From positions 279,981 through 343,980 of the forward strand of contig NIVC01001597.1 of the NCBI GenBank assembly GCA_002269645.1: a DNA stretch of 64,000 bases, written 5' to 3'. The translations under genes were made by a program, and so were the position numbers. This document shows, one piece after another, positions 34,944 through 59,768 of the stretch; within the stretch, counting starts at the first letter, position 1; the number at the start of each line of letters is the position of its first letter. The stretch comes from Macrostomum lignano. Lineage: Eukaryota. The notes under the pieces are model-generated. The model was not told where the DNA came from and did not search any database. It saw only the letters and a program-made list of their open reading frames with translations.

Positions 34944-36239
34944 TTAGCATTTTGACTCAACAGCAGCTAGCATAGTGTTGTACATCTCGCTAAAACAGCT
35001 GCTCAAGTCGCTGTCAGTAGTTGCAGAAATCTCGCAGCCATATTGAAGCACTAGCAGCAAAATGCTTCTCGTATGGGAACAAGTGCTCAAAGTAAGCTCG
35101 ATGCTAACAGCTTCCTTGAGGTGAGCCAATGCATCCTGTGTGAATTCGCCGGCCAAATTAACGGTTGCAGCACCCAGAAGAGTAAAAGCAGATGCGGTTA
35201 AAGGGCTGCCGGGAAAGTGTTCCTTTAAAGCAAACGCGCTTTTACTTAGAAGGACGCTGGCTTTCTCTAAATTCTTCATCAATTCTTCAGTAGAAACAGT
35301 TTGATTCAACGGCTGCTTCTTCCATCTAGCTGTCAGAGGACAGGTCTCTTCATACTCGCTGACTCCTTCGATGTAGTCAGAAAATGCAATGAAATAAATC
35401 TTGGAACGTTCGCTAATAAGGTCTGAGCAGTCGATGAGCTTGCGCGCTACAGCAATCAGTGCACGACTCTTTCGAGTCTGACGCAGTTCAACAAAGCAGG
35501 AAGCCATTCGTAGAATAACGACAATCGACTGGGTGCTTGGCACAATGTCCGAGTCGCTGCGCCGAACCAATTTGTTATTACGCGTTCTACGCTCCAACGA
35601 GAAGTCTAGAAACTGTGGCGCTTTCTCAAAAAATCTACGCCCGCCAACATCTTTTTGAGTAGCGCAGTTCAGCATTAGCCTGGAGACGGACTCGCACATG
35701 AGGCCAGTCAGCTCCGGGGCCAGGGCTGGCCAAGAGTCGCCCAGTCGCAGCAGATATTTAGCAAGCCGGTAGGCACCCTCCGTCAGCCACAGCCAAGCGA
35801 AGCTGCCCCGACGCGAGTCGCTGCACAAGGCCAGATGGGCCTCGTTAACTAAGAACAGAACGCTAGCGAATGCCATTCCTATTCTTTGTCCACCCTCTTC
35901 ATCAATAAACTGATTAGCCAATTGTCTGAAAGCAGCAATACGATCCAATTTGTCTACGGATTTGACAGATGACCAGAGTAGTTCTTCAGCCTGTTGGCCA
36001 ATTAGTGCCAGAAATTCGTCCTGCAGTTCGCAGGCGCTAGCCAGGTCGCTGCTGCAACGACGCCTGAGCTGCTCGTTTGCCAGAATCACCAGTGAGCAAG
36101 CTCTGGCGAACGGAGCCGCGTCACTACATGTAAATTTAAATGCGTTGTTTCTGGCTGTCCAAAACTCTGTATGATCCTGCTCGGGTACAAACCGCAACCA
36201 GGTACCCACTCGGATGATGGGCTCTTGACCAGAGCTCAT
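34944..36239 (-). CDS. Helical/TPR-like array family member T5: single-module (exon 1 only) copy, 431 aa
   Basis: Intact ATG-to-stop ORF homologous to exon 1 of T1-T4 (RRSDSDI, ETCPL, PLTASAFTLLG motifs). No module-2 exon is recognisable downstream. Confidence 0.75.
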   Translation of the reverse strand: MSSGQEPIIRVGTWLRFVPEQDHTEFWTARNNAFKFTCSDAAPFARACSLVILANEQLRRRCSSDLASACELQDEFLALIGQQAEELLWSSVKSVDKLDRIAAFRQLANQFIDEEGGQRIGMAFASVLFLVNEAHLALCSDSRRGSFAWLWLTEGAYRLAKYLLRLGDSWPALAPELTGLMCESVSRLMLNCATQKDVGGRRFFEKAPQFLDFSLERRTRNNKLVRRSDSDIVPSTQSIVVILRMASCFVELRQTRKSRALIAVARKLIDCSDLISERSKIYFIAFSDYIEGVSEYEETCPLTARWKKQPLNQTVSTEELMKNLEKASVLLSKSAFALKEHFPGSPLTASAFTLLGAATVNLAGEFTQDALAHLKEAVSIELTLSTCSHTRSILLLVLQYGCEISATTDSDLSSCFSEMYNTMLAAVESKC

Positions 36240-37653
36240 AGTTTCCGAGGCCTTAGTGACCGGCCTGCTGAAATTGATAGGGAGTTCGGCACAAGATCGA
36301 CAAACAACCCATATACAAAAGCTGCAGATCTTTTCTTCAACTGCATATCAAATCAATAGAAGCTGTCCGTATTTTTTATCTTCTATAGTTCTATTTCTAA
36401 AACTTCTGAAACCCTAGATGTTGCTATTAGAAAAAGTTGTTGAATTTCTCCACGGCATATCCCCACGGCAGCTTATTGAACTTTATCCAAATCTATATGA
36501 TCACTCAGTCACGTGGGCAGCTAAGCAAATATTTAAAATTAACCCTTTTAACGACGTGGAAGTGTTAACAAAGTACTTGATACTATTTAGTAGTTTATTC
36601 GGAAGTTTCTTAAAATAGTGAAAACAAAAAGACGGTTTTTGCAAGGAAGATTTGTTTAGAATAAAAATATGGATATAACGACATATGACGAACATTCAAA
36701 AGGAAAGAAACAATAGTAGACTTTTGATTAGAATTAAGAATACAAAACTACATACAGCATGCTAATAAACTATATGTAAATACCAGATTCAGAAGGACCT
36801 CTGGGGTCCTTGAACAAATGTATTTGAAAGTGCTCTATTCCAACAAGCTGCCGTGGGGATAAGCTGAAAATTATCGACACGGATCTGTGTGGATAAAATT
36901 GGAATTATCGGCACGCAGTGGGGATAAGCACTTCCTTTCAGGAAACGCGTTGACTTGAATTCTCAACAGCAAAGTTACAGTACGCTTGTATAGCTATTTG
37001 ATATAAATATGCATACAGGCGGGCATAAAATATTGAATAATAAAATAAAATGGTGATAAATCTAATTATGTTAGAATCATGAAACATTTTTCAGAAAGTT
37101 AGGTGCAATAAAACGCGAGCTTGATACGGCAAAGCTGACTTTTTAGGTTGATGATTCGCACAAAAATGATGATCTATAAAGTGAATATGCCATGTCGCTG
37201 CCCTTCCTTAGGGCGCACATCCATCATTTCATTTCAAGGTCATGCCCTAAATTACTGCACTGCTAGGGATCTTTTTGATATACAACCCTTTCTGTAACTC
37301 TATGAGCTACCATAGGCCAAAAAGGGAAGCACCAATTCTTGTTAAAAAATATATACACTGTACACGCATATATGTTTTTAGTCAAATAAAAGATGAGATT
37401 TTCCGATTTCCATTGACTTCAAACTCGTTGAATTTCAGCCATGTGTTAAAATCGATAGACAAAAGTATCGTAGAGACAGATGCAAGCTAGAAAAATGGCT
37501 TGACCCATTGAAAATAAGCCAGGCGTGTTTTATAGGCAACTTTTACATGCTGCTAATTTTTATACAAGAACAGTTTTAGATAGCATATACAAACAGAACA
37601 AAACCAAATACGCTAAATATTTTTTCTGATAGATTGTTACTGAAAACGATGAA

Positions 37654-40600
37654 TTAACACTCAGTGTCTCTACCGTAACTGGAATCAACAAGTTGAGCCG
37701 GTTCGCACATCTGCAACAGCTGCTCGTGATTAATCTGCAGTCTGCGAAGTATCCTCTGCTTATCCCGCGGCGCAGCCAGCGTGTACTCATTCAAACCGTT
37801 GAGAAAGTCGTTCCGTCTAGGGATATTGTTCGACGTTCGCGTCATGCGACACTTTGGCACGCAGAGGTAGATCCATTCGCGATCGCAGACACTCTCGTGC
37901 GCGTTCCATAGCTTCATCAGGTAGTGCGAGTAGCACATTATTTCAGTGTAGGTTGGCAGGTTGTCTCCAGGATAAACTCGACCAAACATAGCCTCGCAGG
38001 TTTCTCTGAGATGCTGTTTGCCCTCCCAATCGATAATGGGATCTGGGAAGATGTAAACAGTAGAAGTAAAAGATGTAGGAGCGCATATTCATTTTAGCCA
38101 ATGCCTTTCAAAAATATTCCAGAAACGCACCAACTAATCGCTCAGCAACGAACCGGTCGCCAAGTCGAAGTTCCGTCCATATAGCGTCATCGCCTAGCAG
38201 CAGACTTCTTGTCTCTACAGAGCAATCTCTACTCATTTCTAAGATTGCCTGAAATTGGCCCATTTGGGTTAAGAGAAACACTGAACGTTCACGGCGCATC
38301 TTATGCTGTACACCATCGAAATTACTGTGGGGTTACAATTCTCACTCTGTTCCTACTGCAGCTCAGAGCTTCTACCCTATAACAGCGGGTGAAATCAAGC
38401 TAGGCCTATTTTTCCCATCGTACAATGCGGATACCTTAAAGGGTATTCGACATAAGCCATGCACTTCATATGAATACTAACCAGGGTCAACTCCGCTTAA
38501 CCTGCAGCACTGGAGGTGAATGCCCTAACCAACTTGGCTAGAGATCTTCGATTAATAAACCTATCAAAACCAATAGACAGCTTGACATCTTGTACTCACG
38601 TCAGCAGCAGTCACTATGCCAGACCATTCGCTCTGGCGATCCGACGTTGCAAAGTACACAGCCAGCTTCCTCGCTACATCAATACATCGCCAAGCCCAAC
38701 AACTGGTTGCGCATCCGTTAGCAATCAGGTTGCGCTGGATTTTTAGGCAGGCCCTCAAGCAACTCAGCGCTTTCTCTTCCTGGTCCTCCAGCTGCATCAT
38801 GTTATAGTACATCACAGCTAGCAAAGCGTAGCAATCCCCAGTTAGAGGATGCAGCGGTTCCAACAGCTCCAAGACTCTCGACGCCCGACGAAGTTTAAGC
38901 ACAGCGGCATTATACTGTGAATAAGCCGGTTTTGTGAGATCTTTGACCGCGCTTTTGTAAAGAATGACTGCAGTGGATAAGTGTACACAGGCGTGCAACG
39001 GCGTATCTAGAAGTCCGGTAGAGGTGCACGAATCATAAGCTTCTTGGAATGGCGCCAGTCTACGCTTCGGCTTAGGCATGGGGAGAAGTTCTACATTCAT
39101 ACAATCCTGAGTCAAATCCAACACTGTTGTACTGTTATCCGATGAGCTAATGATATCATTGGTTGCACCGAGTGCATCGTCCAATATTGCGATTCTGTGT
39201 CCGGCAAGAGCAAACACAGGGTCCGATAAACCATTGTCAAGTTTTGGAAGCCAAGATTGTAGTGACTGAATCAAAGATTTGGCACACCGCTTTATCTGCC
39301 TGCTGCGTAGCATCTTACTTGGCAACAGTTCGTTGAGATCGACGCAAACCTCGGCGAGACTGCTGTCAAGTACCGCACCCAGGTGGAACCAGGCCGCGCT
39401 CGCCTCGAAAGCTCCGCGCAGCTCGTTGCTTAACTTTCTACTGTTATTCATCAGGCATCTGGCCGATCGCCAATTGTCAGACCAGAAACGCAGCAGGACT
39501 GAGTCGGTGAAAGAGTACCAGTTTTCCCTGATGTACCTACCAGTCTTTGGAGAGTTCACTGAGTAACCAACAGGTGAAGATCTATTCAGACGCCAATTTT
39601 TTCCCAACTGTAAGCCCAAAAGCACAACTTTTGCCTCATTTGCTTGCCAGAAAGCGCAGCAAACGGCTACGGCTTCTGCCATTTCTGCTACTTTGCCGCG
39701 CTGTAATTTCCTGCGCAACTGAGATAGCTTGAAGCTGCTTTGTCTACTGATGTGCAAAGAGAATTTCTGCGAAAGAAGCTCTTGAACAGCATTTTGCTCC
39801 ACGCCAGCAAGATCTATTGCACACTGAATCAGGTGGAACCTGGCAATAAATAGGCGACATAATATTGCGGCTAGAGCTGAGTCAGTCGCGATGCACTCTC
39901 GCAATCTTCGCCTAAAATAATCTAAACAGTCTTGTCTATAACAGTCGGTGAATCGGAGGTCAACAAGAGGAAGAGAAGGATTTTGGTGCTCAGCAGTCTC
40001 AGCTGCCTCAAGAGGTAGCAAAGATACAGTTGACGAAGAGCTCAGTCGATTCAGCTCAAAATCAACGTCAGACACACCTGCTATTGGATGCTCTTCTTTG
40101 GTTGCACTGAGGTCGTTATGATGCAGAGATTTCTAAAGAAAAAAATTCGGCTAATAATTAGAACATTCCCATTTAACACTTTAATCGTAGATAATATTGA
40201 ATGAGATACTAAGACTTACCACAGAGTTGTGCAGCTCTTTCCATCGGAGTGCAATAGCGCTTTCATCGTTTTCAAATAATCCTGCAGCGACGCTAATTGT
40301 TTGCAACAAATAGCGCATCGTGTTACTCCTTTGCGATAGAGCCATCTCAACCTGAACTGCCTCTTGTAGATACGCGAGAGAAGTATCATTAAACTCCGCC
40401 GTTCTATTAGCTGTCACAATTCCAAGCATTGTAAGCGTTGACGCAAAAATAGTACTTCTAGAAAAGCTCTGTCTCAGCCGGTACGCGCTGCGAGTCAGCT
40501 TTTCCAAAGCGCTGTCGTATAGCTCTCTTAGCTCTCGGGCGTTTAAAATAACCGACCCAGCGTTCAGCTTGCTGTACAAAGGACTTGTACGCTCGAAGTC

Positions 40601-41461
40601 ATTGACACCATCAACATAGTCAATAAAAGCACTCAAGTAGTGCTTGGAAAGCTCGTCTAGAATGGTTGATTTGCCTAGCAGCAAACGGGCTTGACAAATC
40701 AGCGCAGTGCACTTATCCATCTGACGAAGCTCCAAAAAGCACGTGGCCATGTTAACAATAGCTACCATCGACTGCTCGTTCAACAAAATTTCAGCATCGA
40801 TTCTGCGAGTGAGGCCTATTCTCATCCGTCTCTCAATTGCAGCCTGAAAATGCGAGAAAGACTTCAACAAGTACTTGTGCGCGTAGACGTCTTTGACGCT
40901 GGCGCAGTTGAGCAGCAAGCTGCCAATGCTGAATCGAACGCATGCAGCCATTTCTGGTCCGATTTCTTTGCTTTGAAGGCAAATCTTGCCGAGTCTCTGG
41001 GCGCTTTCAACCAGCCAGAACCAGGCCCACGATCCGCACCTTTTTGGATCGCGTAGGGCCATCTGACCTTCGTTTGCTATGAAAACGACAGTAACAAAAT
41101 ATAAAAATGATTTTTCTTCGTTAAAATGAAAATTTGCTAAATATTTGTTGAGTAGTTCTGAGTACTTCTCGCTATCGCTGCAGGTAATGTAGCTCCAAAG
41201 ATCGTTAATCGCTTTTCGTTCCAATAAGTTCATAAAATTTTGTTGAACAGTTTTAGCGTCGTTAAGATTTTGCATTAAAAGGTAATGAAGGCCAAGCATC
41301 ACGTGACAGACAGCTCGTCGCAGAATTTGTTGAGATCGATCCGAATTTTCCGAACTTGAAGCTTCGACAAGCCTAAGACGCTCCTGCCAGTATTGAAGAG
41401 CTTCTTCCCGAGGCACGACTTGAAGCCAGATTCGCATTTCAACCCGCTCCTGATTCTGCAT
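37654..41461 (-). CDS. Helical/TPR-like array family member T4, about 1112 aa, 4 exons
   Basis: Exons 41461-40220, 40132-38600, 38305-38131 and 38042-37654. All junctions are GT-AG with phases 0,0,1; total 3339 nt = 1113 codons. TPR_12-like segment LEPLHPLTGDCYALLAVMYY...ALSCLRACLKIQRNL. Confidence 0.8.
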
Positions 41462-42710: not shown

Positions 42711-45700
42711 TTAAAAATTCGCAAATTTGTAGTGAAAGCGTTTAGCAAACTTGCATTCATTTAACAGCAGATTGTGATTCCGTTGTAGTCGGGTGAAAAT
42801 TTTGTTTTTTTCCTTGACGCTTTTGCGTGAGTACTCGGAAATACCCAGCAAAAAGTGGTTTCGCTCCACGTCAAGTTTTTCCAGCGGACAATCTCGATTG
42901 TCGCCGTTGTGGCACAGCTCCCAGTGCTGACTAAACAGCTTGTTGAGGTAAGTAGCGTAGACTCTGATCTCGCCATCGCTTGGTAGACAGTCCTCTGGAA
43001 ACTGGCGATCCCTAAACAGATTTGTGAGGCCTTTCATGCTGACAGTTCGCTTTTCTTCCCAGTCTACCAACGCATCTGTAACGTTGATTGATGTTTTTTT
43101 ATAAACGAGGAAATCTTATTTGTCAATATAGCTAGATGGAATTAAAAATCCTAATTAAAAATCCATTCAATAATGAGAAAGTGTGTTCTAAACTGTGTTT
43201 TTACATTCAGGTAAACCAAGTCTCAAATACCAAATGGCTACACGTGCAAATTTACACTCACCTGATAGAGTTTCAGCCAACATAGTCTCGGAATTCGATG
43301 CATCGTCAATATCGACTGGCATTTGACACATCAAAGTCTTTCGACCAAGAAGGGCCTGCCGAAGACAAATATGATTAAATGTACCGCGTCCAGAATATTT
43401 TTTAAAGATTGCATGCATAATAGTGAAAAACTTACAAACAATTTATCGAATATACTTTGCCATTCGCGTTCAATCAGCGCATCCTCATCATTCGTGTTTT
43501 GCCGCAACATACGAAACTGCTCTCTGCGAATTCGGGCCACATCTAAACACTTCCATAGCCAGGGACTGGGCGATGCTTCCTTGACGATGAGATTGCTCTC
43601 AATCCTGGCACACTTTCTGAGACACTGAAGGCATCTAGATTCTTGCTCGTCAATCTGCATCTGACTGGAGTAGAGAACGCTTAAAACAGTGTAACAGTAC
43701 GTCACTTTGACATCATCGCCGCAGATAAGCTCGAGAATTCTAGCAGCTTTCCTAAACTTTAAAATTGCAGCACTGAAACTGTCGTAATGAGGCTTAAACG
43801 GATTAACTTCCCCATAGCGTAATAGCTGAAGACCCGCTTGCATGTGCACCAAAGCGTGGGCCACTGTATCCATTAGACCTCTTTTTTGGCACAGGACGTA
43901 AGCCTCATCCAGTTGTTTCAGCTTGTCGGACGCCTGCGACGTGTCTATTATAAAGTCGAAAGTCTCTAGGATGCCAGTTGACTCTAAAAGGCTAGAGACG
44001 AGACCACCGTGAAGCCTGCGATTACGCCTCCCAGCTGATTGGTTCAGTAGACGATTCAACAATGCGGGAAAGTTCACGCACACAGAGTTTAAGTAACTCA
44101 ATAAAGTCTCAATTCCTGGGCCATTGTGACTTTTTTCTAAACGTTTTAATCGGTTTAGGTCTTGTAGCAAGTCAACTGTGGTTGTAATGAGTTTTTTATC
44201 GGTCTTGTAGCGATCATCGAATGCTACGACGTCATTTAGTCGGTAGAAGCCTTCTGCTAAATAATTTTCCAAGAAAATAAGAGCAGGAATTTCGTCAGAT
44301 TTCCAGCTATTTCGGATCGCGTTGAACAAATCCTGACCGCGCCTGAAACATTCTTGAGCTCTTTTCCAATCGTTGCTTTTCTTGTTACTCAGCCGAAAAC
44401 TATACAAAGCCCAAGAAACAAGCTGCGAAGCGAATGACTCATCGCCATCGTCCCAACGTTGCCGCACCTCTGCGGCGGACTTTTGCTGATAATATTCGAG
44501 CGCATTACCAAGAGCCAGCATGCCTTCATTGACAGTCCAGAATGCGACTACAAAGATCAATTCTCTGCAATGGCGTGGAAAAGATTCAGACATAGCTTTA
44601 AATGAAAAGCTTCCATTGGTTTCTAGCTTCAGACCAAATGCAAGAGAGATCAGGCGTGAGACTTTAGCTTGTCGGCATTCAGCTTTTCTCAAGAAATACG
44701 AGCGTAAATTATGTCTTGAGAGAAATAGAAGGAAAACCAATCTGTGTAATATTTGGCTACGGTCCAGAATATTGTTTAATTCCTTCTTCCAGTAAGCTAA
44801 GCTTCCTTCGCGATATCCATCGGTGAACTCTCTTGCTTTGGCAACTACATTAAAGACACTATCGCTTTGACTGGACGCTTCAACATCGGTAGGAACGTCG
44901 ACTTGAGATCGAATTGTTTCTGGTTCTCTTGTAGTAACGATCTAGAATTAGAATGTGATACTTACATTAGCTCTTACTGAAGTACCGGTATGCTATAAGT
45001 GAAAAAATTAAATTTAAATCATTACCAAGAATAAAAATTATCAATGCTTACGGTAAAGTACAACTCTCGACACTTGTCTCGAGCAGCCTGCGTAGTTGCC
45101 AGCGTGGTACCTTGCTGCAAAATCTGGATCATATTTGCAGCCATAATAGTGTTGGTTTCGAATTTAGACTCTAGCGAAACAGCCTTCTCTAAATAATACA
45201 AACCGCCTTCATGCTCCATTGTAAAGTCGGCTGCTTCGTTCACGCAAACAATGCCCATCAATGTGTACGCAGAAGCGGTAAGCCCAAGTTCGGAGATTTC
45301 TTCCGTTAAATTTTTCAAACACTCGCGCAGGTGTTTCTTTGCACTTCTATATGCTTTCATAAGCTTTTCGCGGTCAAGTAAACGAGAACCCGCATTAAGT
45401 TTACTGGCTAGAGGACAAGTTTCCTCAAAATCAATTAGTCCGTTCAAGTACATGGCATAGGCAGTAAAGTAAGTCTTGCAAACGATTTCAGTATCTGCTG
45501 GTAACTTGTTGAGTTTAAGAGCCTGATCGATCAACTTTCGAGCCTTCGTAGTCTGACGAAGTTCAATAAAAATGGCCGCCAACTTTAGAATTCCTTCGAT
45601 AGATTCATCGACAACTCTAATATCCGAATCTAGCTTGCGAACTATTCTTGAATGTTTTCTAGGCTTCCAATTAATCATGGCTTCAAAACAAAGGAATGCT

Positions 45701-46623
45701 TTAGATAGATACCAATGTTCAAAGGTACCCTGCTGCATTCAACAGCTAAAAAGAATGCTTCCAGTGGCGTGTCTGGATAGGTCGACAAAAACTTTGGACT
45801 CTTCGGGCGCTCTTCGAATATAATCAGTACACAGCCAGAAAAGAAACTTTGTTTTCTCTCTTAGTCTATGCGCTCGGACACTGGTCCGGTTAAAGAGCAT
45901 TAAACGGCATTCGCCCACTATATAATGTAAAGTGATGAACTGAAGTGTGCAAGAATGCTCATGGGTCCACTCAAATGTCAGTTGACTCGACGCAGCCTTT
46001 GACTCTCCGCTTTTGTTGCTAGACTTAGGCTTGAAACATTCTTTTATAAGCTCTTCATACTTGTCTGCATATCTATTAGCCATAAGAAACTTTGCGCTAG
46101 CTTTCACACTGATTCGCCGGTTTGTATTGTTTTCTTTGCTTTCAGTAACGATGCCTTCATGTTGCGAAAGTTGAGACGTTATAGCACCATTTCCTTCTCT
46201 ATTGTCTTTAGGAAGCTTTGAAAAAGCTCGGGTATTATTTCCCTTATTCATACTGCCCTCGTCGATTACACCACCGCTGCATTCAGGGTCCGAATTCGGA
46301 GAGGCGGCGTGGTTAAGCGTGTCTGCAGCTTGTTTGCCAATTAAATTTTTGAACAAATTGAGGAATCTTTGACCTTCCGTTGCTTGATTCCTAAATAGAT
46401 ATTCGTTTCCCAAAAATACAAAGATAAAAGCCTTTGCAAAAAACCCAAATGTCTTTTCAGCATCTTCGTTCTTACATTCATCGACTCCAAGTAGTCCATC
46501 TCTTGTTTTCAGTTCATTGTAACGAGACTTTAAAAAGTCAAAATATTCCTCATTCGGGAAGAAGTTTAACAAGGGTGTCGGATTAGGCGGCTGTGGAAGA
46601 ATCTCTAAGACCGTCGCGTCCAT
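42711..46623 (-). pseudogene. Helical/TPR-like array family member T3, 4 exons, in-frame TGA at 45741-45739
   Basis: Exons 46623-45052, 44941-43436, 43355-43262 and 43075-42711; total 3537 nt = 1179 codons. The only lesion is TGA at a position where paralogs have Ala (FSC*MQQ vs LNCASV / FNCAKR). Confidence 0.72.
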
Positions 46624-46950: not shown

Positions 46951-47184
46951 GCTAAAGCTACGCTAAGGCTACGCTAACGCTACGCTAAGGCTACGCTAAC
47001 GCTACGCTAACGCTACGCTAACGCTACGCTAACGCTACGCTAACGCTACGCTAACGCTACGCTAACGCTACGCTAACGCTACGCTAACGCTACGCTAACG
47101 CTACGCTAACGCTACGCTAACGCTACGCTAACGCTACGCTTACGCTACGCTAACGCTATGCTAACGCTACACAAACGCTACGCT
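46951..47184. repeat. 10-bp minisatellite (GCTACGCTAA[C])
   Basis: About 23 near-perfect units between T2 and T3. Confidence 0.96.
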
Positions 47185-48255
47185 CGTGGAACTCGTGTAC
47201 TATCTGTCGAAAGAAATTATAAAAACAACGGAAAAGATCATGGTTTATTTTCGTTTCTCAAATTCAAATTCACATCCTAATGAGAGATAAAGTTTTTCAA
47301 AGCATTTGATTTACTGCGAGTCTGGCTATGTGATAATAAGTTTATACCGAAACTAACAATAATATAATATTGTTAAAAAAACTGCAAACGAAAACAAGAA
47401 GTTATAGTTTTAAAAATTAAAAGGCGATCGCTACGCTAACGGAAAAAGCATGAAGATGCAAAGATAAAACAATAATTTTCTTTCGAGTATTGAATACGAG
47501 TAGCTCCGATTAGCTCGTAGAGCTTAGGAAATATTTAAAATAATGAAGAGAAAAACAAGCTGAAAGCAGAAGCTGTTTAAATGGTTTTGATTAAAGCTAT
47601 TGGCACATATTCAAATAAAACGCGTTTTTGACACATTGTATGGGTTGATAAAATGTACATGTACTTTTATTAATAGAGTACTACACTCTATTCAACACAA
47701 CACTGTTTAATGCAAAAGATACATGTAGGGACAAAAAACGAATCTGGACCTTCTAAATCCTACAATGCTTCGAACCCATTCATAATGCTCATATGGCAAA
47801 TTCAGTTTTCAGACCAAGAGCTTATGTCTTTGAAGACTAATGACACGGGAATTCCACTTTTTGTAATATCTTTCTCATACTTGCTTTACTTTCCTATGGG
47901 AAATTGTAACAGAAATGAGGGCAATTTTAAGGACCATTTCAAAAAGATGTGTAAAACACGTGTTAGAAAGAGTAGCTAGCTAATTCGAAGGAATCAGCTG
48001 GTATAACTTGTAGCGAATGTGGCAGTCAACATTTAAAAATTTAATGAAGAACAGCCAAGTCAAAAGTAAAGAAACTATAACGCAATATAACAATATCAGC
48101 AACAAGTCTGCGATTTTTAGAGTGAGATTAAAAAACGGACGGAACCAAAATTAGCACCCAACAAGATTCACTAAGCTAGTAAAAACGTTCCATAAAAAAA
48201 CTAAAGCGTCCTTTAAACTCGTAACCTTGCAGTTTATATTGTCTGCGTTCTATCG

Positions 48256-51200
48256 CTAGTAGGTAACATCATAATTTTCATGAAATTTGCGCGCTTTCGG
48301 GCAAAGCGTCACCAACGAATTGTGAACCTGCTGCAGCTGCTTGATGATGCTGATCTTAACTGTTGCAGTGCTCTCAGAATAGATGTTCATGCCTCGAAGA
48401 AAGTCATTTCGCTTTACTAGGTTATTTCTCGAGAGATTGTCTAAAGTGCATGGATCTTCCCGTGTCTCCTGTTTGCTTTGTTCAGCTGTTCCAGTACTGC
48501 CCTGTTTGTGCCTTGCCATACGGCAACTGACCAAGTGACGGTCGAACAGCTTCATCAGATATCGAGCGTAGCATCGAACTTCAGTGTCAGAGGGCGGACT
48601 ATCTTCGGGAAACTCTCGATCCCACATCATCACAGCGATAGCTTTGAGGCTCCGATTTCGCTTCTCCTCCCATTCGGTTAATGGATCTAGTAAAAAAACG
48701 AATACGTTGGTAAATTTACTTGCACATTCGTAAAATATAGCAACAGGTTAAAAAAGCACTATACTTGGGATATGTATACTCAGTTAGTCAATTTTGAGTA
48801 GTTTTAACAATACAACATTTTCATTGCATTCTCTCTACTTAAAATTGGAAGGTACAAGTAACCTAGCGTCATTAATCATTGTATCTATAAGGAAAAGCGA
48901 TGAAATAAAGACCAGCGCTTTCGATGGAAAATCTAAAAATACGAAAGGCTCAGACCAAGTTTTAACACAGGGCCCATACATAAATTATACATACTAAAAA
49001 GCATGGGTTTGCTCACTAGCAAGCAAAGTAAATATAATTTTCAAGCACAACAAAGGTGAAAAAACCTACCAGTCAGTGCTTCAGTGAGAAGGTTTGAAGC
49101 ACCCAAAGGAGAGGAACCAAAGTCTTGCAAGTAAAATAACGGCCTGTCTTTGTACAACGCAGTCTAAAATAGCGTAAAATCAGCAAATTAACTGAATGCA
49201 CAAATGCGTGATTAAATAGCATGTAAAATATTACAGCACACATGAATTTAGTCCACAATTAATGTGAAAAAATAAGTAAAACACATTTTTAGTATATGAA
49301 GAAGATATCTACGAACCTTAAACTTTTGACTCAACTCATTCCATGACTCGAGATCTTCAGAGAATGAAGCACCATCGCGGTAGTTATTGGAAACTCGGTT
49401 TAGAAATTTTTGAAAGAACTGCACAATCTCTAAGCCTTTCCAAAGCCAAGGACTGGGTGATACGCCTTTCACTACCAAGCGCTTTTCCACGCTTAAACAC
49501 TTCTTAAGACAGAGAAGGCACTGCGTCTGTTGATCGTCTAGCTGAGCGTGATATCGATACATATAGGCAAGAATTAAGTAGCAAAAAGCTGTTTTCACGT
49601 CGTTCGGACACAGTAGCTCGAGTATTCTGGCAGCCTGCCGAAACTTAAGAATGGCGCCACTTAAAGTGCCGTAGGGTGATTTAGTTGGGTCTCTAAATGC
49701 TTGAATAAATAGTTCAATACCCACGTGCATGTGAATGAGAGCATAGAGCTCCGTATCAACCAGCTCCGCTCTTTGACACAAATCATACGCTTGTTGAAGA
49801 ATTTTCAGCTTGCCAACGTAATGCGCAACGGTTAAAACAACATCTAAATTGCATTTATCAGCGGGCTTTTCTTCAGTCTTATTAAACTCATAAGGTAGCA
49901 CTTCCAGCAGATCCAAAAGTCCAGGGAAATTAACCTGAGCTTTATGCAAGCATAACATCAAGTCCGTAGCGGTCGAATCGACAGTACCAATGCTTCGCCC
50001 GACGTCTTTTGAATGCTTATCGACGTCTTTCAGCAACAAAGTCACAGAATGAATAAGTTTATAATTAATTTCGTAAATACTGTCCACTGAGAACATTCTA
50101 TCCAGCTGGTAATAAGCGTTGGATAAATGTTCTTCTAGAAACACGAAAGCAATCCAATCAAGACCTTGTATGCTGGTTTCGTTTTTCTGGACAATTTCAC
50201 TAACCAGATTTAAGGACTCGAAAGCCTCGAGCCAGGAGTTTTTCTGCGAAGCCAAGAAGCTCGTTACAACAGAACAAGCTCCTAAAAGATACGAAACAAT
50301 CATTTTTCCGATCTGTTCTGACCATGAGTCCCTAAAGTCAGTTTTAACAAATGACGAAGCGTTCTTCTTCTGATGCTCCTCTGAGGCTTGCAGAATAAAA
50401 ATAATGCCTTCGTTCACCAACCAAAGTGCAACTAGAAAGACCAACATTTTGTGATCTTTGGGGAACCTCAACTCGAAGTCCTCATATGTAATTCTGGCTA
50501 AACGACAGACATCCAGCTTTATACCGAATCCAATATCCAGTAGGTGTGCAGCCTTCTCTTGTTGATGTTTTGCAGAAGACAAAGCTTGAGTATTCAAATA
50601 ATGGCGAGTAATGCAGAGAATGCAAAACACCCTGACCGGAATGTCTTCGATGTCCTCATACTTGCGTACTAACTTCTTTAAATATGCAAGCGATTCTAGT
50701 CGGTAGCCATCCAAAAAGTCTTTCGAGTCTTTGATCGTACGTATTATAGTCATCCATGCTGAGCCATCGCTTGAATCAACAGAAGACTCGAGATTGCTTT
50801 TCGGTACCATATCAGCTTGGAGATTTGAAGCGCTGCGCACATTGGAGCTCTCATCAGCAGGCTGTGTTCGTACGCTCTTCTCTAAAAATCTTCTTTTGAT
50901 GGCTGAATTCTGAAGAATTTAAAGGAAAATGAAGTAGCATGTTACTAAGCAGGTGAATAAACATGAAGTAATGAAAATAACTATTAAAAGGTATGCAAAA
51001 CTTACAGCTCTGTTGTACAACTCCTTGCATTTTGCAGAGCTAGTCGAGTCAGAACGCAAATTAGCACCAACGTGAAGAAACTGCAACAAATATGTTGCCG
51101 TCACTGTTCCCGACTCCAATGCACACTCCAAATGTACAGCTTTCTCAAAGTTCTGAAGAGCCTCTTCCGAAAACGCACCAGCACTATTGACGAGAACTAC

Positions 51201-52512
51201 AGACAGCATTGTGACAGCTGAAGCAGTGAGAGGATCACTTGCGTAGTTACTTCTCAAAACAGACGCGCTTTTCTCTAAGCATGACTTAGATAATTCGTAC
51301 TTCTTTTTCAAAAAATCTCGATTAAGAGCTTTACTGCTGCAATCAAGACCACTCTTCAACGGGCATGTGTCCTCAAAGTGGCTTACTCCTTCGACATAGT
51401 TGGCGTAAGCTGTGAAGTAGGAGACAAAATCAACGCTTTTGTCTTGCAAGCGATTCAGAAGCTGCTTTCCTAGCTTAACCAGCGCCATACACTTTTGCGG
51501 CAGACGCAACTCTAACAAACAAGCAGCCATGTTCAGAATGGAAGTGATGGACCACCCATTAGGAATAATGTCTGAATCGATTCGTCGAATCAAGCTGGCC
51601 TTCTGAGGTCGCCGCTCGATTGCCCCTTCGGAATATTGGAATGCCTTTACGAGGAACTTGTGCTCGTAAATTGTCTTCCTTTTAGCACAGTTAAACATCA
51701 GTCTGCTCATGGTTAACCTCAAAGAGTTTGCAAGACAAGGGTCGACTGCGACTGCCTTCTGACTGAAGTACTGAGTCGCCAACCAATGGGCAAATTGACA
51801 ATAAGACAACCAATCTGGTTTTTCAGAAGTATCATCGTTCCAGAGTGCGATGGGGCTCGTAGCATTTACCTGCAACGTAATGCGCAGTGACAAATGTTAT
51901 TGCGCTCTTGAAGCCCTGTTTATCATTGGCTTCCTCTGTTTCCGATTGTCTCTTTTGTCTTTCTTGCTGTTGATCAGTGGTTTTTGCCATGCTTGATTGA
52001 TTGTTCTTTGGTTGTATGTCGCTTTCGCTCTTTGTCTCGGTTTTTTGCTTTCTTTGCTCATATTCAAAGTGCTCAGAAGAAATTTTATCAAGGAACTCAC
52101 TGTACTGAGAGATCATAACCAATTTATGTTCGCTGGGTGTTTTTAGTTTTCGCTTATTAGCGGGTTGATCCACACTCTCTTGATTTTCGCCGTGTTTTTC
52201 TTTCTCTACTGCTCCAGACTTTGCTTCGTGACCACTGTTTTCCATCGCTGAGTAGAGTAATTTAAACGCGTCACCCAATAAACTCTCAAACTCTTTCAAA
52301 AAGCGCTCTGTTTGAGCATTATTTTGCCGAACTTGATACTCATTTATCAGCATTACAGTGGAAAGAGATTTCTCGAGGAGTCCAGCATCTTTTGAATGAT
52401 GAACGCGATTATACCTGTCTTTCCAGTACTGCAAGTTGAACGTATTCGCAAAATACTGAAGAAACGCAGCCTCTCCATCTTTAATCAATCCTTGATTTAG
52501 TTCAGAAGCCAT
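48256..52512 (-). CDS. Helical/TPR-like array family member T2; 7-nt insertion frameshift in exon 1, possibly removed by a 55-nt intron (about 1189 aa)
   Basis: Exons 52512-51006, 50909-49317, 49163-49070 and 48686-48256. Insertion GAGCCCC (51858-51852) relative to T1. Removing the GT-AG segment 51869-51815 gives 3570 nt = 1190 codons. Otherwise this copy is a pseudogene. Confidence 0.7.
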
Positions 52513-54775
52513 CAGCTTTGAAATAAGCTATGAAACCCCAAGTCGCCGATATAATTCTTGATCACGAATTGAACGTCACGAATTAAACGTGAACCCAGTC
52601 AGAGACTGGTTTCAGAAATTTTTAAATGGAAGTTTCATCGATAAACAAAATCTGAAAGGAATATAAAGAATAAGCCAGCTGTATGAAACATAATAAGCAT
52701 CAAGCAGTATCATAGCCAGTAATCAAGTAATTTCCCGTTGCCTATCAAAAAACGCTAGGTATTTCATTTGTAGTGCATCATTATTCATAAAATGCTACTG
52801 TAAGTAGACTAATGCAAACATGCGCAGCAAAACTTAGTGTGAATCAGGTTACTATTTGTAACGAAACTATGAAGCATGTTACTAATTATAATGGGAAGCT
52901 GTATCGTGTTACTATTTATAATGAAAAGAGGAATCATGTTACTATCTACAGTATATTGAAAAGAGTAAGCCCTTGTTGGAGTCTTTATAATTTTACTATT
53001 GAGAGCCTTGTTATTGCTGGCAGTTACTGTTCAGTTGATTTTAGAGTTATTGAATTGGAGACTCCCTATTCCTAAGGGATTGGATAAAATCTACGGACCG
53101 ATTCCGATACTCTTAGAGGATTATTGATTTGATTCATTTTGGTACCCTAGAGTAACCGATAGGAGCACACGATTCCGATTCCGCTATTTCTAGAAGACGA
53201 CGCCCTTTCTGGAGGACCTCGTCATTGTTATAGAGTTAAATTTGTTATTAGGGCCCATCTCTGATATCTGCACTCGAGAAATATATCGAAGTCGACGGGT
53301 TAAATTGTTATGTTCATTAAAGTGCTCTCATATTCAGCCGACTTCAGGATTCAAGAAGACTACTCCGGATCGGAGGAAGACTACAAGCTCTACAGACCCG
53401 CCCAACAAAGAAGAGGAGCCTGCACCAGTAAGTGCTCACTGAATTTTGTTCTCATGCTTGAAGTCTGGAAGTGGGAGTTCGTGCGTTTAGACACTAGACC
53501 TAATTCTCTCTCTATTTTCTCTCTCTCTATCTCCCTAGCCCTCTCTCTCTAGTGTGCTAAAGCGAACTCTTTACATACTAGGAAATAGCGCACAGAATAT
53601 CCTTCGGCAAAAAACCTAAAATATACTATTGAAAAGTATCAATAAAATTATAGTGTGCAGGAACTCTAACTGTGTGGGCAAGATTTTGGTACCCGATAGA
53701 ATTGCGACCAAGGGATTTCGGAAGACGCTCCTTGCTAAGTTAAAAAACTACAAAAAACAAACAATTTTTGAGAAGAGTTATGCCAGATATCAACTTTATT
53801 CGACGTTATTACAATTGTTATAGAATTAAAAACAAAAAAATGCTACATTACTGACTTTGGCATTTACACTTCTAACTGTTCAAAATGATAAAAGTAAAAA
53901 AATCTGCAAAGCCTTAAAATCTTATTCATCATTGCTATCTAGGATTCGAGAAATTCCCGCAGTTCTAGTTCAAGAAAATCGTTATAGTACAATAGCTAAA
54001 ATTACATGAATATAGTTAGCCTAAGCGTGTTGAAACGGTGAAACGCACGGAAGCCCGCCCGCTGAAATTTTCTATGGCTGACTTCAATAAATATAACAAC
54101 TCGTACACATATTGGATGAAAATAGCCTGTATTTGGTTAATGTTATACCACCTAAAGCTGTTCGACTTTAAGAATATTCAATTCTCTGCGAAATGCTTAT
54201 TTATCAGTTACTGTTTTTTCGATTCGCAAAATAAGGAGTTTTGACCATAGACAATTTCTTAGATTTCATTTTTTTCGTTTTCCAGAGTGCTCATGTGCAA
54301 ATTGTGTGCAAAGGCTAAGCTCCCCTATGACCCCGCTGTCTTCTGACTGCCATAGACATTTTCAGCGGGCCGTGAAACCGACTGAATGCATTGGAATAAA
54401 TGGGATTTTACCATAGACAGTCTCAGCGGGCTGTGAAACGCGGTTTTTTGTTTATATTGGTAAATTGTTGCCTTACAAAAGTATGCTTCCGCTAAATATA
54501 ACTACGCATAGGAACATCAAAGACAAGTAATAAGAAATAAGGAGAAAAATCAAACCATACTGTAAAAACACCGCATAAAAGGGTAAATTGTTTAAAAGTA
54601 AAGTCAGATTATATTGCACACGAATCACGATGTTGGTACATAAAAAGACAAAAGAAAATAAAATAAAATGTTTCAGCGATTTTTTTCTTTGTGACTAAAG
54701 GCATTCAGACGAAATCAAATAAGTATGTCACACAAAAATGAAGCCAAAAATCAGATAGAATGAATGCAGAGTTTC

Positions 54776-57700
54776 TTAATAACCAACTTCATGATTTTCG
54801 TGGTAGTCCCTCGCTGCTGGGCAGTTTGACAACAATAAATTATGAACTTCTTGCAGCCGATTAAGAATTTTAATCTTCTCCTGTGCGTTGCTCTGAGAGT
54901 AAATATTAAGGCCTTGAAGAAAGTCGTTTCGCCTAACCTCTCCGCTCTGTCCAAACGAATTTGGAATTTGGCATTTACCGTATTTAGAGAAAAAGCAACT
55001 GTCGGAGTGACTGTTGAATAACTTCGTCAAGTATTGGGCGTAACAGCGGATCTCTGTGTCAGATGGCGGACTGGCGATAGGAAATTCACGATCCCGCATT
55101 ATCACTGCGATTGCTTTCAGGTTGCGAGATCGTTTCTCCTCCCAATCGGTGAGTGGATCTGTGCAAAAGTTTAAACAAAAACAGCTTATTGCAATATTAG
55201 CGTCAGATGCGCACAGAACAGCAGTAAAATAGCAATTTTTTAACATTGGCTGGTTAGCTGCCTAAAAAGCGTTAATTAATACTTTGTCGATCCAAGTCAG
55301 GGCGATAGATACGAATAAAAGATATATATTTATTCGCAATAAAATGAGGCGCCTAAAATTTTTAGCACAGCAGACGCAAGCTACCTTCCCTCGCTTTGAC
55401 TCTGTGTATTTTTTGTTGTTTCTGCCCTTTGTGTACTACTACCAGTATGCTTTACACATATTTAACTAACTCGCGGTCTGCATTGTTGCCTTCCGAAAAT
55501 GCTCATTTTAAGTCACGGGTTTCTTTAATTTTTATACACAGCATCCACACCTTTTCAAGTTCAATTTGGCTTATATCATTTACGTTTAAGCCAACTTATT
55601 TCAGTTTTCTTTAAAAAATACACTGCTGTCCAACAGCCTTCTGACCCAGAAAAATGTATAGACGATTGATTTTTCTCAAACCGCACTCTGCTGATTATAC
55701 GAGCAATATTGCATAGGTCGTGTAAACGCATCCCAAGTCTTATGCTGACACAGCTGAATAAACAGGAAATTTAATACTCATTTCAGCTACTGAAAAATAT
55801 ACGCACTAACTACTGAAAACTAGCTGAAATCACCGCTTCTGGGAATGCTTGCCATAGCTTGCCGTTATCTATGGTTTGACTGGGTGCTATACTGAGTGGC
55901 CTATCTAGTGTATATAAGATCGATGGTCTGGGCTGGCCAAATCCAAGTCTGGGCTTGCTTTTCAAGGCCGGACTACCCTAGACTCAGCTTTCTACATACG
56001 GCCATTGGTGTTAAAACAAAATTGCATGTGTAATGAGCAGCTCAGCCGCTGATTAGAGCACATCAAAAGCTAAGCGACTATGTTGATTGTAATATTTCCA
56101 GAAATTCTGTGCATCAATTAGGGTTGGATTTACAACAACTAAGAAACGGAACGGTTTAAGATCCGTTTAGACCTTTCTGATTCGTACGACTTGCTTGCAT
56201 TTTTAAAAAGATTCTGTTTAAATAAAACCCTAAAATAAACCGACCGATGGTAAACACCAACGCTAACATTTATGATTATGCAATTAGACCTAGGTATTAT
56301 TTGCACGCTCTTCCATGTTAAGTAAAACTGATAGCAAGAGCAAATTTATCTATACTCGTCAAAGTTATAGAGGTTATTTCGCTTCGTTTTACTTTTTTCA
56401 GCAACAATAACAGATAATACAGAATGGTCTTCAGTTATCTAAAATGATAAATTGAAAATTCGTACTTATTAAAAAAATAAATGACTGAGAGTCATAAGCT
56501 TAACTTACCCGTTAAAGATTCAACCAAAAGTACATAATTAGTAATAGGGAAGGCGCCAAAGTCACTCAAATAGTATATATTCTTCTTTCTGTTTACGGCA
56601 GTCTAAAATTCAATTTATATTAACAAATATTCAGCTATTTTACAATGAGTAGAAACATGAAAAAGAAAAGTACGTAGCTTTGAAAATATTAATTACCAAG
56701 AACTTTCGACTAAGTTCATTCCACGATTCCAGATCATCATAGAATGAATTACCGTCTCCGTAGTCCTCCGAAATTCGGGCGAAGTACTTTTGAAAAAAAT
56801 GAACGATCTGCAAGCCTTTCCAAAGCCAAGGACTGGGCGATGTGCCCTTCACTACCAAGCGCTTTTCTATGCTTAAACATTTCTCGAGACAGCGAATGCA
56901 TTGCGTATGCTGATCATCTAGCTGCGAGTTATAACGATACATAATACTAAGCATTGTGTAGCAATAAGCCGTCTTGACATCGTATAGATCCAGTAGCTCA
57001 AAAATTCTGGCAGCCTGTCGGAATTTCAAAATCGCGCCATTTAAAGTGTTGTAAGGTGGTCTCTTTGGATTCCTGAAAGCTTGCTGATAGAGTTCGATGC
57101 CCACGTGCATGTGAATCAGAGCATAGAGCTGTGTGTCAACCAGCTCCGCTCTTTGGCACAGGTCATATGCTTGTTGAAGAATGCGAAGTTTATTCGGGTG
57201 GTCGCTTACTCCATAAATTACTTTCAAGTTAAATTTTATCTCGGGTTCTTCTTTGCTGGCTTTAAATTCGTAGGGCTGATCTTTCATCAACTGCAACAGA
57301 TCTGGAAAGTTTACTTGAGCTTTATGCAGACAAATCATTAGATCCAATGTCGTGCCACTCAATGCAGAAGACTCGCTACTCACAAAAATACTTTCAGTGA
57401 AATCTTCAACGTCTTTTAGCAACTCAGTTACGCAGAACATTAACTTAGGATTAGTAAAAAATCTTTCTTCAACAGACACAATTTGGTCCAGCCGAAAGAA
57501 TGCATTAGCTAGAAAATTTTCGATGACTACTAATGCTGTCCGCTCGCAGTCAACTATGTCAGATTTGATTGTTTCAACAAGACCCTTAGCGTGACTTAAA
57601 CAATCCAGGGATTTCATCCAAGTGGTCTTTTGAAATGTAAAAATTTTGAGCAGAATATTTCCAGTCCAAGATAAAAATGATGAAAGCGTTAAAAACACTT

Positions 57701-59768
57701 GCTCTGTCCTAGAAGGAATGTACCTGGCTGGATATAATTCTGAAGCGCGCATTTTCTGATGCTCCTCTGAGGCTTGCAGAATAAAAATAATGCCTTCGTT
57801 CACCAACCAAAGTGCAACTAGGAAGACCAACATTTTGTGATCTTTGGGGAAACTCAACTCGAAGTCTTCATATGTAATTCTGGCTAAACGACAGACATCC
57901 AGCTTTATACCGAATCCAATATCCAGTAGGTGTGCAGCCTTCTCTTGTTGATGTTTTGCAGAAGACAAAGCTTGAGTATTCAAATAATGGCGAGTAATGC
58001 AGAGAATGCAAAACACCCTGACCGGAATATCTTCGATGTCCTCATACTTGCGTACTAACTTCTTTAAATGCGCAAGCGATTCTAGTCGGTAGCCATCCAA
58101 AAAGTCTTTAGAGTCTTTGATTCTACGTATTATAGTCATCCATGCTGAGCCATCGCTTAAATCAACAGAAGACTCGAGATTGCTTTTCGGTACCATAGCA
58201 GCTTGGAGACTTGAAGCGCTACGCACATTCGAGCGCTCAACTTTAGGCTGTGTTCGTACGCTCTTCTCTAAAAATCTTCTTTTGATGGCTGAATTCTGAA
58301 GAATTTAATGGAAAATGAAGTAGCATGTTACTAAGCAGGTGAATAAACACAAAGTAATGAAAATAACTATTAAAAGTTATGCAAAACTTACAGCTCTGTC
58401 GTACAACTCCTTGCACTTTGCAGAGCTAGTCGAGTCAGAACTCGAATTAGCACCAACGTGAAGAATCTGCAACAAATATGTTGCCGTCACTGTTCCCGAC
58501 TCCAATGCACACTCCAAATGTACAGCTTTCTCAAAGTTCTGAAGAGCCTCTTCCGAAAACGCACCAGCACTATTGACGAGAACTACAGACAGCATTGTGA
58601 CAGCTGAAGCAGTGAGAGGATCACTTGCGTAGTTACTTCTCAAAACAGACGCGCTTTTCTCTAAGCATGACTTAGATAATTCGTACTTCTTTTTCAAAAA
58701 ATCTCGATTAAGAGCTTTACTGCTGCAATCAAGTCCGCTCTTCAACGGGCATGTGTCCTCAAAGTGGCTTACTCCTTCGACATAGTCGGCGTAAGCTTTG
58801 AAGTACTTGTAGAGCTTGGTTGATTTCGACAAATCAAAGCGCTTCAGTATCTGCTTTCCTTGTTCAATTAGAACGCGACATTTCTGTGGCAAACGCAACT
58901 CTAACAAACAAGCAGCCATGTTCAGAATGGAAGTGATGGACCACCCGTTAGGAATAATGTCTGAATCGATTCGTCGAATTAAGCTTGCCTTCTGAGGTCG
59001 CCGCTCGATTGCTGCCTCAAAGTACTGGAACGCTTTCACAAGGTACTTGTGTTCGTAAATAGTTTTTTTCATAGCGCAGTTGAACATCAGTCTGCTCATG
59101 GTTAACCTCAAAGAGTTTGCAAGACAAGGGTCGACTGCGACTGCCTTCTGACTGAAGTACTGAGTCGCCAACCAATGGGCAAATCGGCAATAAGACATCC
59201 AATCTGGTTTCTCAAAAGTATTATTGCGCCCAAGTGCAATGTAGCATTTTCCCGCAACGTAATGTGCAGTGATGAATGTTATTGCGCTCTCAAAGTCCTG
59301 TCTGTCAGTTGCCTCATGAAGCTTAGGCTGATTAGCCTCTTCAATTGGGTACTTGTCTGTAAGCGCTTCGGTTTTTAGTTTACTTTGCTCATTTCGAAAG
59401 TTCCGGGCAACGAGTGCATCCAAATACAATTGGTAAATTGCCATCGTTTGGTATTTACTTCGTCCTTCATCCCCATTCTTGCTCCTAGATTCAATAGCCG
59501 CTTTAAGTATTTCAGAAGAATCAGAATCCGCAAAAATGTTTTCCAAAAAATTCACGTAATAGGTTGTTTTGCTAGTATTTTGTCTTATTTGAAATTCATT
59601 TAAAAGCATAACGGTTGAAAGAGACAAATCCAAGGCCCTGGAATCCAACCGGCTTAGAGCTTGCTTGTGTCTTTCTTCCCAATATTTTAAAGTCCCGTCA
59701 TTTGCATAAACTTGAAGAAATAGTGCGTCGTCGTCGGAAATAAGTCGATTGCTCGACATAGTAGACAT
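54776..59768 (-). CDS. Helical/TPR-like array family member T1, about 1150 aa, 4 exons
   Basis: Exons 59768-58392, 58295-56697, 56602-56509 and 55158-54776. Donors GTAAGT, GTAATT, GTAAGT; total 3453 nt = 1151 codons with no internal stop. Confidence 0.82.

Follow-up and report, generated by a model that had tools for sequence, protein, structure and literature searches.

Organization of the array

The stretch of DNA analysed here (the window) comprises 64,000 nucleotides of the flatworm Macrostomum lignano (assembly GCA_002269645.1, contig NIVC01001597.1, positions 279,981 to 343,980), and its minus strand carries, from 59768 to 34944, five head-to-tail copies of one gene, four of which (A to D) have four exons while the fifth (E) consists of exon 1 only. 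A full-length gene would give a TPR-like protein of two modules, a short linker and a C-terminal domain. A sequence-only reading of the window had proposed that one four-exon gene is repeated head-to-tail four times and followed by an exon-1-only fifth copy, and this is borne out both by our gene models, in which the ends of open reading frames (ORFs) were read in three frames and joined at GT..AG sites, and by the copy map obtained with tblastn. Every long ORF within 34944-59768 lies on the minus strand, and tblastn with copies A, C and D as queries across the window recovers just these pieces. As also proposed, all 12 introns have GT..AG ends, the intron phases are 0, 0 and 1 in each of A to D, the boundaries fall at equivalent alignment columns, and exon 3 is exactly 94 nt long in A, B and C despite their differing peptides (it is 118 nt in D). 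The motifs listed in that reading (RRxDSDI, ExTCPL, TASAxT, WxxNEG, AYDLCQ, HMHVG and AILKFRxAARIxEL) and the C-terminal block of ~125 amino acids (aa) were all found.

Copy A (59768-54776; this and all other copies are on the minus strand) has exons of 1377, 1599, 94 and 383 nt and introns of 96, 94 and 1350 nt; it is intact, with zero internal stops, and its 3453 nt encode 1150 aa. Exon 1 (58392..59768) encodes module 1 in 459 codons from the ATG, equal to residues 1-459 of the deposited protein P0016, and ends in phase 0 at the donor GCT/GTAAGT. Exon 2 (56697..58295) encodes module 2 in 533 codons between the acceptor TTCTTCAG and the donor TTG/GTAATT, with phase 0 at both ends, and is followed by the 94-nt linker exon 3 (56509..56602), which ends in phase 1, by the 1350-nt intron 3, and by exon 4 (54776..55158), which encodes the C-terminal domain and the stop codon. 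Copy B (52512-48256) has exons of 1507, 1593, 94 and 431 nt and introns of 96, 153 and 383 nt. The frame of its exon 1 (51006..52512) is broken by an insertion of 7 nt at 51853-51859 relative to A, and the ~216 codons at the 5' end of this exon are under relaxed constraint; exon 2 (49317..50909) is present in the GenBank models P0002 and P0016, the 94-nt exon 3 (49070..49163) encodes the peptide TALYKDRPLFYLQDFGSSPLGASNLLTEALT found in P0016, and exon 4 (48256..48686) again holds the C-terminal domain and stop.

Copy C (46623-42711), with exons of 1572, 1506, 94 and 365 nt and introns of 110, 80 and 186 nt, has an in-frame TGA at codon 295 (45739-45741) of exon 1 (45052..46623). The junctions of its exon 2 (43436..44941) are identical in P0010 and P0003, and exon 3 (43262..43355, 94 nt) and exon 4 (42711..43075, C-terminal domain and stop) complete the gene. 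Copy D (41461-37654) is intact and encodes 1093 aa, in exons of 1242, 1533, 118 and 389 nt with introns of 87, 351 and 88 nt. Exon 1 (40220..41461) is unannotated on NIVC01001597.1, counterparts of this copy (P0004, P0005 and P0006) being annotated on other contigs; exon 2 (38600..40132) is followed by the 118-nt exon 3 (38131..38248), which ends in phase 1 and whose peptide AILEMSRDCSVETRSLLLGDDAIWTELRLGDRFVAERLV is joined likewise in P0005 and P0006, and by exon 4 (37654..38042), with the C-terminal domain and stop. A tRNA-like or SINE-like nature of intron 2 of copy D was considered and rejected, since ARAGORN and Rfam were blank and the sequence is not repeated elsewhere. Copy E (36239-34944) is a single-module paralogue limited to exon 1, whose 431-aa ORF ends in a stop codon of its own, with an AATAAA ~100 nt downstream, and tblastn with A, C and D found no remnant of exons 2 to 4 downstream of it in the window. 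Canonical poly(A) signals follow B and E and do not follow A, C or D, a pattern too weak for use.

Two claims about these models held in part. A whole number of codons in each spliced total applies to A and D; B measures 3625 nt (3n+1) from its ATG, and neither B nor C complies unless exon 1 is begun past the frameshift or the TGA, respectively. Likewise, the length of 1100-1200 aa given for the product fits A (1150 aa) and D (1093 aa) and does not fit B (1001 aa) or C (883 aa) when these are read from starts past their lesions.

Existing annotation and transcript support

The closest protein matches of the array are M. lignano entries named 'hypothetical protein BOX15_Mlig...'. The GenBank annotation of GCA_002269645.1 derives from genome-guided RNA-seq assemblies that were divided into genes according to trans-splice and poly(A) sites mapped by experiment (PMC5730564), and the deposited proteins P0002 (copy B), P0010 (copy C), P0005 and P0006 (copy D) and P0016 have the same exon junctions as our models, the 118-nt exon 3 of D included. 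The junction between exons 1 and 2 of copy A is also used by P0001 and P0015. Since these RNA-seq-derived proteins carry identical junctions, the four-exon structure has transcript support; the genes are real, transcribed and spliced as modelled. They are also already public as hypothetical proteins, annotated but unstudied. An earlier description of the family as 'undescribed' and 'hidden as separate ORFs' is thereby halved: spliced GenBank models exist, yet no paper or accessible supplement in the literature mentions any of the seven Mlig identifiers.

Just two models lie on NIVC01001597.1 itself, P0016 and P0003, and copies D and E are unannotated there. P0003 (Mlig034560g1) starts at the Met right after the TGA (Met296 of copy C) and has the sequence of C from there on; the DNA surrounding its gene (L002) matches window positions 55738-32711 with 100% identity. 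The counterpart of C on NIVC01000572.1, P0010, has Gly at codon 295 and is intact, with 1178 aa. Among the versions of copy A that we have seen, the one in the window is the only one fully intact. On NIVC01000421.1 a single base is missing from exon 2 (at ~4640 of the segment compared, L001, the counterpart of window position 56799), and this loss puts the end of P0001 (991 aa) out of frame; in P0015, the third version (NIVC01000215.1), the model keeps intron 2.

The model P0016 (PAA66035.1, Mlig032872g2) joins exon 1 of A (59768-58392) to exons 2 to 4 of B (50909-48256) and so bypasses ~7.5 kb that hold exons 2 to 4 of A and exon 1 of B. Either this is real splicing between copies, or it is an artefact of transcript assembly by way of a near-identical A/B tract that is described below. 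The model of B on NIVC01000421.1, P0002, starts at an internal Met within exon 1 of B itself. The names of A, B and a further family gene, F, share a transcriptional-unit prefix (Mlig017162g1-3), and this prefix, taken with the annotation method, suggests that F, A and B are co-transcribed and then trans-spliced. Each of the five ATGs in the window has an acceptor-like YTNCAG motif 28-139 nt upstream of it (chance about 0.008), which could be a trace of trans-splicing or of introns in the 5' untranslated regions, although it is only a hint.

Extent of the family and order of its genes

Exhaustive scoring of 1.84 billion cluster representatives with a profile built from copies A to E gave 8 matches at E <= 1e-3, each below 1e-30 and every one from M. 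lignano, in keeping with the lineage specificity that had been proposed. The matches comprise A, B, C and D together with two more paralogues, F (P0013, 1094 aa) and G (P0014, 1083 aa). Word-indexed searches for homologues, with A and with a five-sequence profile, gave P0001 and P0002 only and missed known members, and are uninformative on completeness. No dispersed members of the family were found in the annotated M. lignano proteome.

The genes are ordered TOP1-G-F-A-B on NIVC01000421.1, G-F-A on NIVC01000215.1 and B-C-D-E on NIVC01000572.1 (the segment compared on this last contig is L003), and from these three partial orders it follows that the full locus is TOP1-G-F-A-B-C-D-E, with seven family genes. 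The window starts at A because the contig ends there, window base 64000 being the end of NIVC01001597.1. Gene order and content agree wherever the locus has been assembled more than once. According to PMC10733133, the genome of M. lignano DV1 comprises three paralogous subgenomes, and the other assembled parts of the locus are probably those of other subgenomes, which fits the two to three assembled versions of each part. Downstream of B on NIVC01000421.1, positions 14520-23470 of L001 are unrelated to the window and contain a repeat ORF of the (AEAKA)n type and a 653-aa ORF without Pfam match, which may encode a transposon protein. Copies C to E were not seen within 9 kb downstream of B on this contig; either the assembled copies differ in structure here or the assembly is wrong.

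Predicted architecture and fold

Pfam searches with every exon ORF and with six family proteins gave nothing significant save a marginal TPR_12 match on F (P0013), which lies outside the window (E 2.2e-7; 31.4 bits against a cut-off of 30.1). Below threshold, A matched TPR_10 (E 0.24) and TPR_8 (E 0.83) and the C counterpart P0010 matched TPR_14 (E 0.02); D and E gave none. An AlphaFold2 (AF2) model of full-length A, built from a five-sequence alignment, is all-alpha with 47 helices, and its module 1 has pLDDT values of 70-90. Searched against the PDB, Foldseek returned 22 matches below E 1e-3, all of them TPR proteins or other alpha-solenoids (probability 0.93-1.0, TM 0.09-0.19), including Ctr9, IFT-A, IFIT1, SKI3, TSK, separase and designed TPRs. 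At the level of fold class the family proteins are accordingly modelled as all-alpha and TPR-like, and the helical, TPR-like character that had been read from the window agrees with the AF2 model, with the TPR solenoids that head the Foldseek matches and with the TPR_12 match on F. The reported lack of an NB-ARC, P-loop or enzyme motif was likewise upheld by Pfam and by the Walker A regular expression [AG]xxxxGK[ST], which has a single, non-conserved match, in D, and reveals no conserved P-loop. Neither an N-terminal signal sequence nor a convincing membrane segment was found in the family proteins, which suggests that they are probably intracellular.

Comparison of module 1 with module 2 by hhalign, with profiles of seven paralogues, gave a probability of 94.8% and an E of 5e-8 over 368 colinear columns, against an E of 0.67 for a control in which module 2 was reversed; a first comparison with the window copies only (probability 9%, E 0.004) was not significant, and significance was reached only with the seven-paralogue profiles. 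From this match we infer an internal tandem duplication of a helical module of ~450 aa, with one module per exon and E as the single-module form. Two architectural points are new here, the homology of the ~450-aa modules in exons 1 and 2 and an invariant set of His and Cys residues in the C-terminal domain, which is without known relative. The AF2 model of the last 324 residues is all-helical (pLDDT 76) and has weak matches to TPR modules only, none of them below E 0.038 in Foldseek. For the family as a whole, profile searches of PDB sequences gave nothing significant, the sole match being Med4 at E 0.32. The possibility that the C-terminal domain is a third, partial module was rejected, as hhalign gave E 0.26-0.31 against either module. 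It contains an invariant H-x3-C, a variable-length loop and an invariant C, with a near-invariant H-x6-C in the last helix, and this set of His and Cys residues is a possible candidate for a zinc site. The residues conserved among A, C, D, F and G cluster in three blocks (~250-450, 830-950 and 1050-1150 of A), one closing each of the two modules and one at the C-terminus. This pattern does not sustain the division into a variable sensor and a conserved effector that the sequence-only reading had drawn, and no enzyme-like or otherwise known fold was recognized in the C-terminal domain.

Age, selection and gene conversion

Amino acid identity is 63-67% between A and B and 26-40% in the other pairs. 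By the Nei-Gojobori method, the proportion of synonymous differences (pS) is ~0.78, i.e. saturated, for all pairs except A-B; the duplications are therefore old, and rapid divergence cannot be inferred from them. Between distant paralogues with saturated pS, dN/dS (omega) is not computable; comparisons were made with the copies on other assembled contigs, L001 on NIVC01000421.1 and L003 on NIVC01000572.1. Copy A differs from its counterpart on L001 with a dS of 0.009 and an omega of 0.43, which is not significant. The whole of B compared with L001 gave a dS of 0.060 and an omega of 0.28 (dN < dS, p 3e-7), and the whole of D compared with L003 a dS of 0.069 and an omega of 0.38 (p 1e-5). For E and its counterpart on L003, which also has an open frame, dS is 0.045 and omega 0.18 (p 2e-4; 13 synonymous and 8 non-synonymous changes), and for C, with 2 synonymous and 5 non-synonymous changes from L003 (dS 0.003), omega is not meaningful. 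The rapid divergence that had been described is thus not supported: dS is saturated between paralogues, and omega lies between 0.11 and 0.43 in the comparisons with other contigs.

Along B, again relative to L001, omega falls from 0.51 in the first 216 codons (not significant) to 0.31 over the remainder of exon 1, 0.18 over exon 2 (p 4e-6) and 0.11 over exons 3 and 4. In those first 216 codons the frameshifting indels differ between the contigs, L001 having losses of 6 and 4 nt, and the TGA of C occurs in the window copy only. Exons 2 to 4 of B, together with D and E, are under purifying selection, which is more than the relaxed or neutral decay named beforehand as a finding that would count against the earlier reading; the N-terminal region of B is decaying, and C has been lost in one assembled copy only.

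Between A (57742..59311) and B (50356-51928), blastn cross-hits delimit a tract of ~1.57 kb with ~92% nucleotide identity, also on the minus strand, that runs from the 3' portion of exon 1 through intron 1 into the 5' portion of exon 2. In sliding windows dS is 0-0.3 within this tract and saturated in its flanks, and a tract of high identity between saturated flanks implies gene conversion (or unequal exchange) between A and B. The nonsense allele of C, the decayed 5' part of exon 1 in B, the truncated E and this conversion tract agree with the birth-and-death evolution that had been suggested. The history of the array is one of slow birth and death with conversion, neither neutral decay nor demonstrably fast adaptive change. 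Divergence between the window and L003 is itself a mosaic, dS being 0.003-0.005 over exons 2 to 4 of B and over C and 0.045-0.069 over D and E, a pattern that points either to exchange between the subgenome copies, by recombination or conversion, or to an assembly that is chimeric.

The state of copy B and the chimeric model P0016 raise the question of whether the array is a combinatorial splicing locus, in which an upstream exon 1 is spliced in frame to a downstream exon 2 to give proteins of mixed modules, leaving B's own exon 1 dispensable. Intron 1 has phase 0 in all copies, P0016 unites exon 1 of A with exons 2 to 4 of B from the same contig, and F, A and B are filed under one transcriptional-unit prefix; moreover, both assembled copies of B carry frameshifts of independent origin in the 5' part of exon 1, and exons 2 to 4 of B are strongly constrained. 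Nevertheless, we consider this explanation unlikely. The junction in P0016 falls within the ~92%-identical A/B tract, where transcript assemblers are prone to form chimeras, P0002 on NIVC01000421.1 includes the exon 1 that B would not need, and no chimeric model with C or D is on record.

Possible function of the family

Our working hypothesis, which we regard as probable, is that the family consists of non-enzymatic interaction scaffolds or adaptors, encoded by an old seven-member array in M. lignano as proteins of two modules and a C-terminal domain. The four exons of a full-length gene would together give an all-alpha, TPR-like protein of ~1100-1200 aa that is probably intracellular. Modules 1 and 2, of ~450 aa each and encoded by exons 1 and 2, would stem from an ancient internal duplication; exon 3 would provide a short, variable linker; and exon 4 would provide a conserved helical domain of ~125 aa that is unrelated to the modules and whose His and Cys residues could hold a zinc ion. 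The conserved blocks would keep the fold and a shared partner, and the poorly conserved first half of each module could allow binding specific to each paralogue. Known TPR scaffolds (Pfam clan CL0020, with the TPR_12 proteins kinesin light chain and LGN, and Ctr9, SKI3/TTC37 and IFT-A) are likewise all-alpha and built of paired helices, as predicted for the family, and are likewise without a catalytic domain, the size of ~1100 aa being near that of Ctr9 and SKI3. Unlike them, the family has a two-module duplication and a C-terminal domain with His and Cys residues, and has no sequence relative beyond M. lignano.

Several points weigh against the scaffold hypothesis. The role is drawn solely from the fold class and from the absence of catalytic domains, and searches of the literature and supplements found no functional, expression or interaction data on the family. 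No window copy is significant with any Pfam TPR model. The AF2 model of full-length A has a mean pLDDT of 54.6, with 30-45 in module 2, and the Foldseek TM-scores of 0.13-0.19 mean that 'TPR-like' denotes a fold class and not a family. The match between modules 1 and 2 in hhalign can be inflated by repeat character shared between two helical-repeat regions, the restriction to Macrostomum is inseparable from the poor database sampling of other macrostomids, and co-transcription is deduced from a naming convention of the annotation and not from reads.

The recognition, defence or reproductive role that had been proposed for the array is a guess. In its defence version, which we find distinctly unlikely, the genes encode lineage-specific intracellular proteins of non-self recognition, resembling either the TPR-only IFIT sensors or the repeat part of NLR/STAND proteins, with variable helices that bind pathogen ligands and a C-terminal domain that signals. 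The likeness to the interferon-induced, TPR-only IFIT proteins of vertebrates lies in the tandem paralogues, the predicted TPR-type helical fold, the absence of any enzymatic or NTPase domain and the absence of a signal peptide, which points to a cytosolic location as for IFITs and NLRs. IFIT1 and IFIT5 are among the Foldseek matches (E 7e-5 to 4e-3, TM to target 0.30-0.38), where they score no better than unrelated TPR proteins, and the matches as a whole are generic (Ctr9, IFT-A, SKI3, separase, designed TPRs), with a TM to query below 0.2. Furthermore, the family proteins are more than twice as long as IFITs, and profile searches of all PDB sequences, IFIT1 and IFIT5 included, gave no IFIT match at E <= 10. 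With the NLR/STAND proteins that have TPR arms (NB-ARC-TPR and NACHT-TPR, of fungi and invertebrates) the family has in common helical repeats, a lineage expansion and a tandem layout; by Pfam and the Walker A search it lacks both their P-loop NTPase (NACHT or NB-ARC) and their effector domains at the N-terminus, and no TIR, death-fold or other signalling domain was found. Divergent tandem paralogues with features of birth and death, restricted to one lineage, speak for a defence family, but the gene order and content are stable across assemblies, unlike the copy-number turnover typical of immune arrays, and with omega at 0.1-0.4 positive selection was not seen. A reading that unites these two ideas, namely that the array is a co-transcribed module-shuffling locus in which cis-splicing between copies yields a diversified, Macrostomum-specific repertoire for intracellular recognition, seems to us quite improbable.

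Macrostomum is known for fast-evolving reproductive genes, and the array might instead hold sperm, seminal-fluid or egg genes that diverge under sexual selection in this hermaphrodite. The family is indeed lineage-specific and divergent, which is circumstantial; the lack of a signal peptide makes a secreted seminal-fluid protein unlikely, no comparison of assembled copies gave an omega of 0.45 or more, and no record of tissue expression for the family identifiers was found in the literature or supplements, so that we hold this explanation to be very improbable. Least probable of all is that the copies are decaying pseudogenes or expressed junk without protein function. In its favour, the window holds a nonsense codon in C and a frameshift in B, the A counterpart on L001 has the 1-nt deletion that truncates P0001, and D and E are unannotated on NIVC01001597.1. 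Against it, the frames of A and D stay open through all 1150 and 1093 codons, and dN falls significantly short of dS in B (p 3e-7), D (p 1e-5) and E (p 2e-4); paralogues saturated in dS still agree in intron positions and phases, and the counterpart of C on NIVC01000572.1 is intact.

The UniRef names attached to the WormBase-ParaSite-derived P0011, P0012, P0005 and P0006 are Separase, SCC4 homolog (SCC4/MAU2) and CHAT domain-containing. Separase, SCC4/MAU2 and CHAT proteins have long helical TPR-like regions in common with the family (separase was matched by Foldseek at E 8e-4, with a TM of 0.12), but the names are automatic and unsupported, as neither Peptidase_C50 nor CHAT was found on P0005, P0006, P0012 or the window copies even at E <= 1, and the proteins so named matched no Pfam domain at all. 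The idea that the gene belongs to a transposable element was also rejected, because no copy has a transposable-element domain and the paralogues have conserved spliceosomal introns in common.

Lineage-specific helical-repeat families are common in invertebrate genomes, and the present family is an uncharacterized member of the broad TPR-like helical-repeat class; no long-standing question is touched yet. If our description is true, it represents a clean case of a taxonomically restricted multigene family in a flatworm that serves as a model for regeneration and sex allocation, in which a module of ~450 aa was duplicated internally, one per exon, and then amplified to a seven-gene array that has been kept wherever more than one assembled version of the locus exists, probably in different subgenomes. 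RNA interference and transgenesis are established for M. lignano, and the array would thus be a tractable case for the role of orphan TPR-like scaffolds. It also bears on how conversion, pseudogenization and possibly splicing between copies shape gene arrays after polyploidization.

Other features of the window

On the plus strand, at 28331-33021, lies a non-LTR retrotransposon (long interspersed nuclear element, LINE), the sole transposable element in the window. It has a GC content of 0.57-0.61, a 341-aa upstream ORF and an intact 1213-aa ORF2 with endonuclease, reverse transcriptase and RNase H (Pfam RVT_1, E 6e-31). A segment of ~7.8 kb that includes it (~26228-33996) is missing from NIVC01000572.1, and the LINE segment is therefore a recent insertion specific to the assembled copy in the window, which may still be active. 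Truncation of copy E by the LINE was considered and rejected, since an E truncated in the same way occurs on L003, where the LINE and the sequence beside it are lacking.

Minisatellites with periods of 16-41 nt and 24-50 copies each crowd the initial 14 kb of the window (893-13523), for example at 3125-4113, 4898-5988, 11063-11981 and 12519-13523. Nearer to the genes, an 11-nt array occupies part of the spacer between B and C (46951-47184), and a 15-nt array of 31 copies lies just upstream of A (60601-61113).

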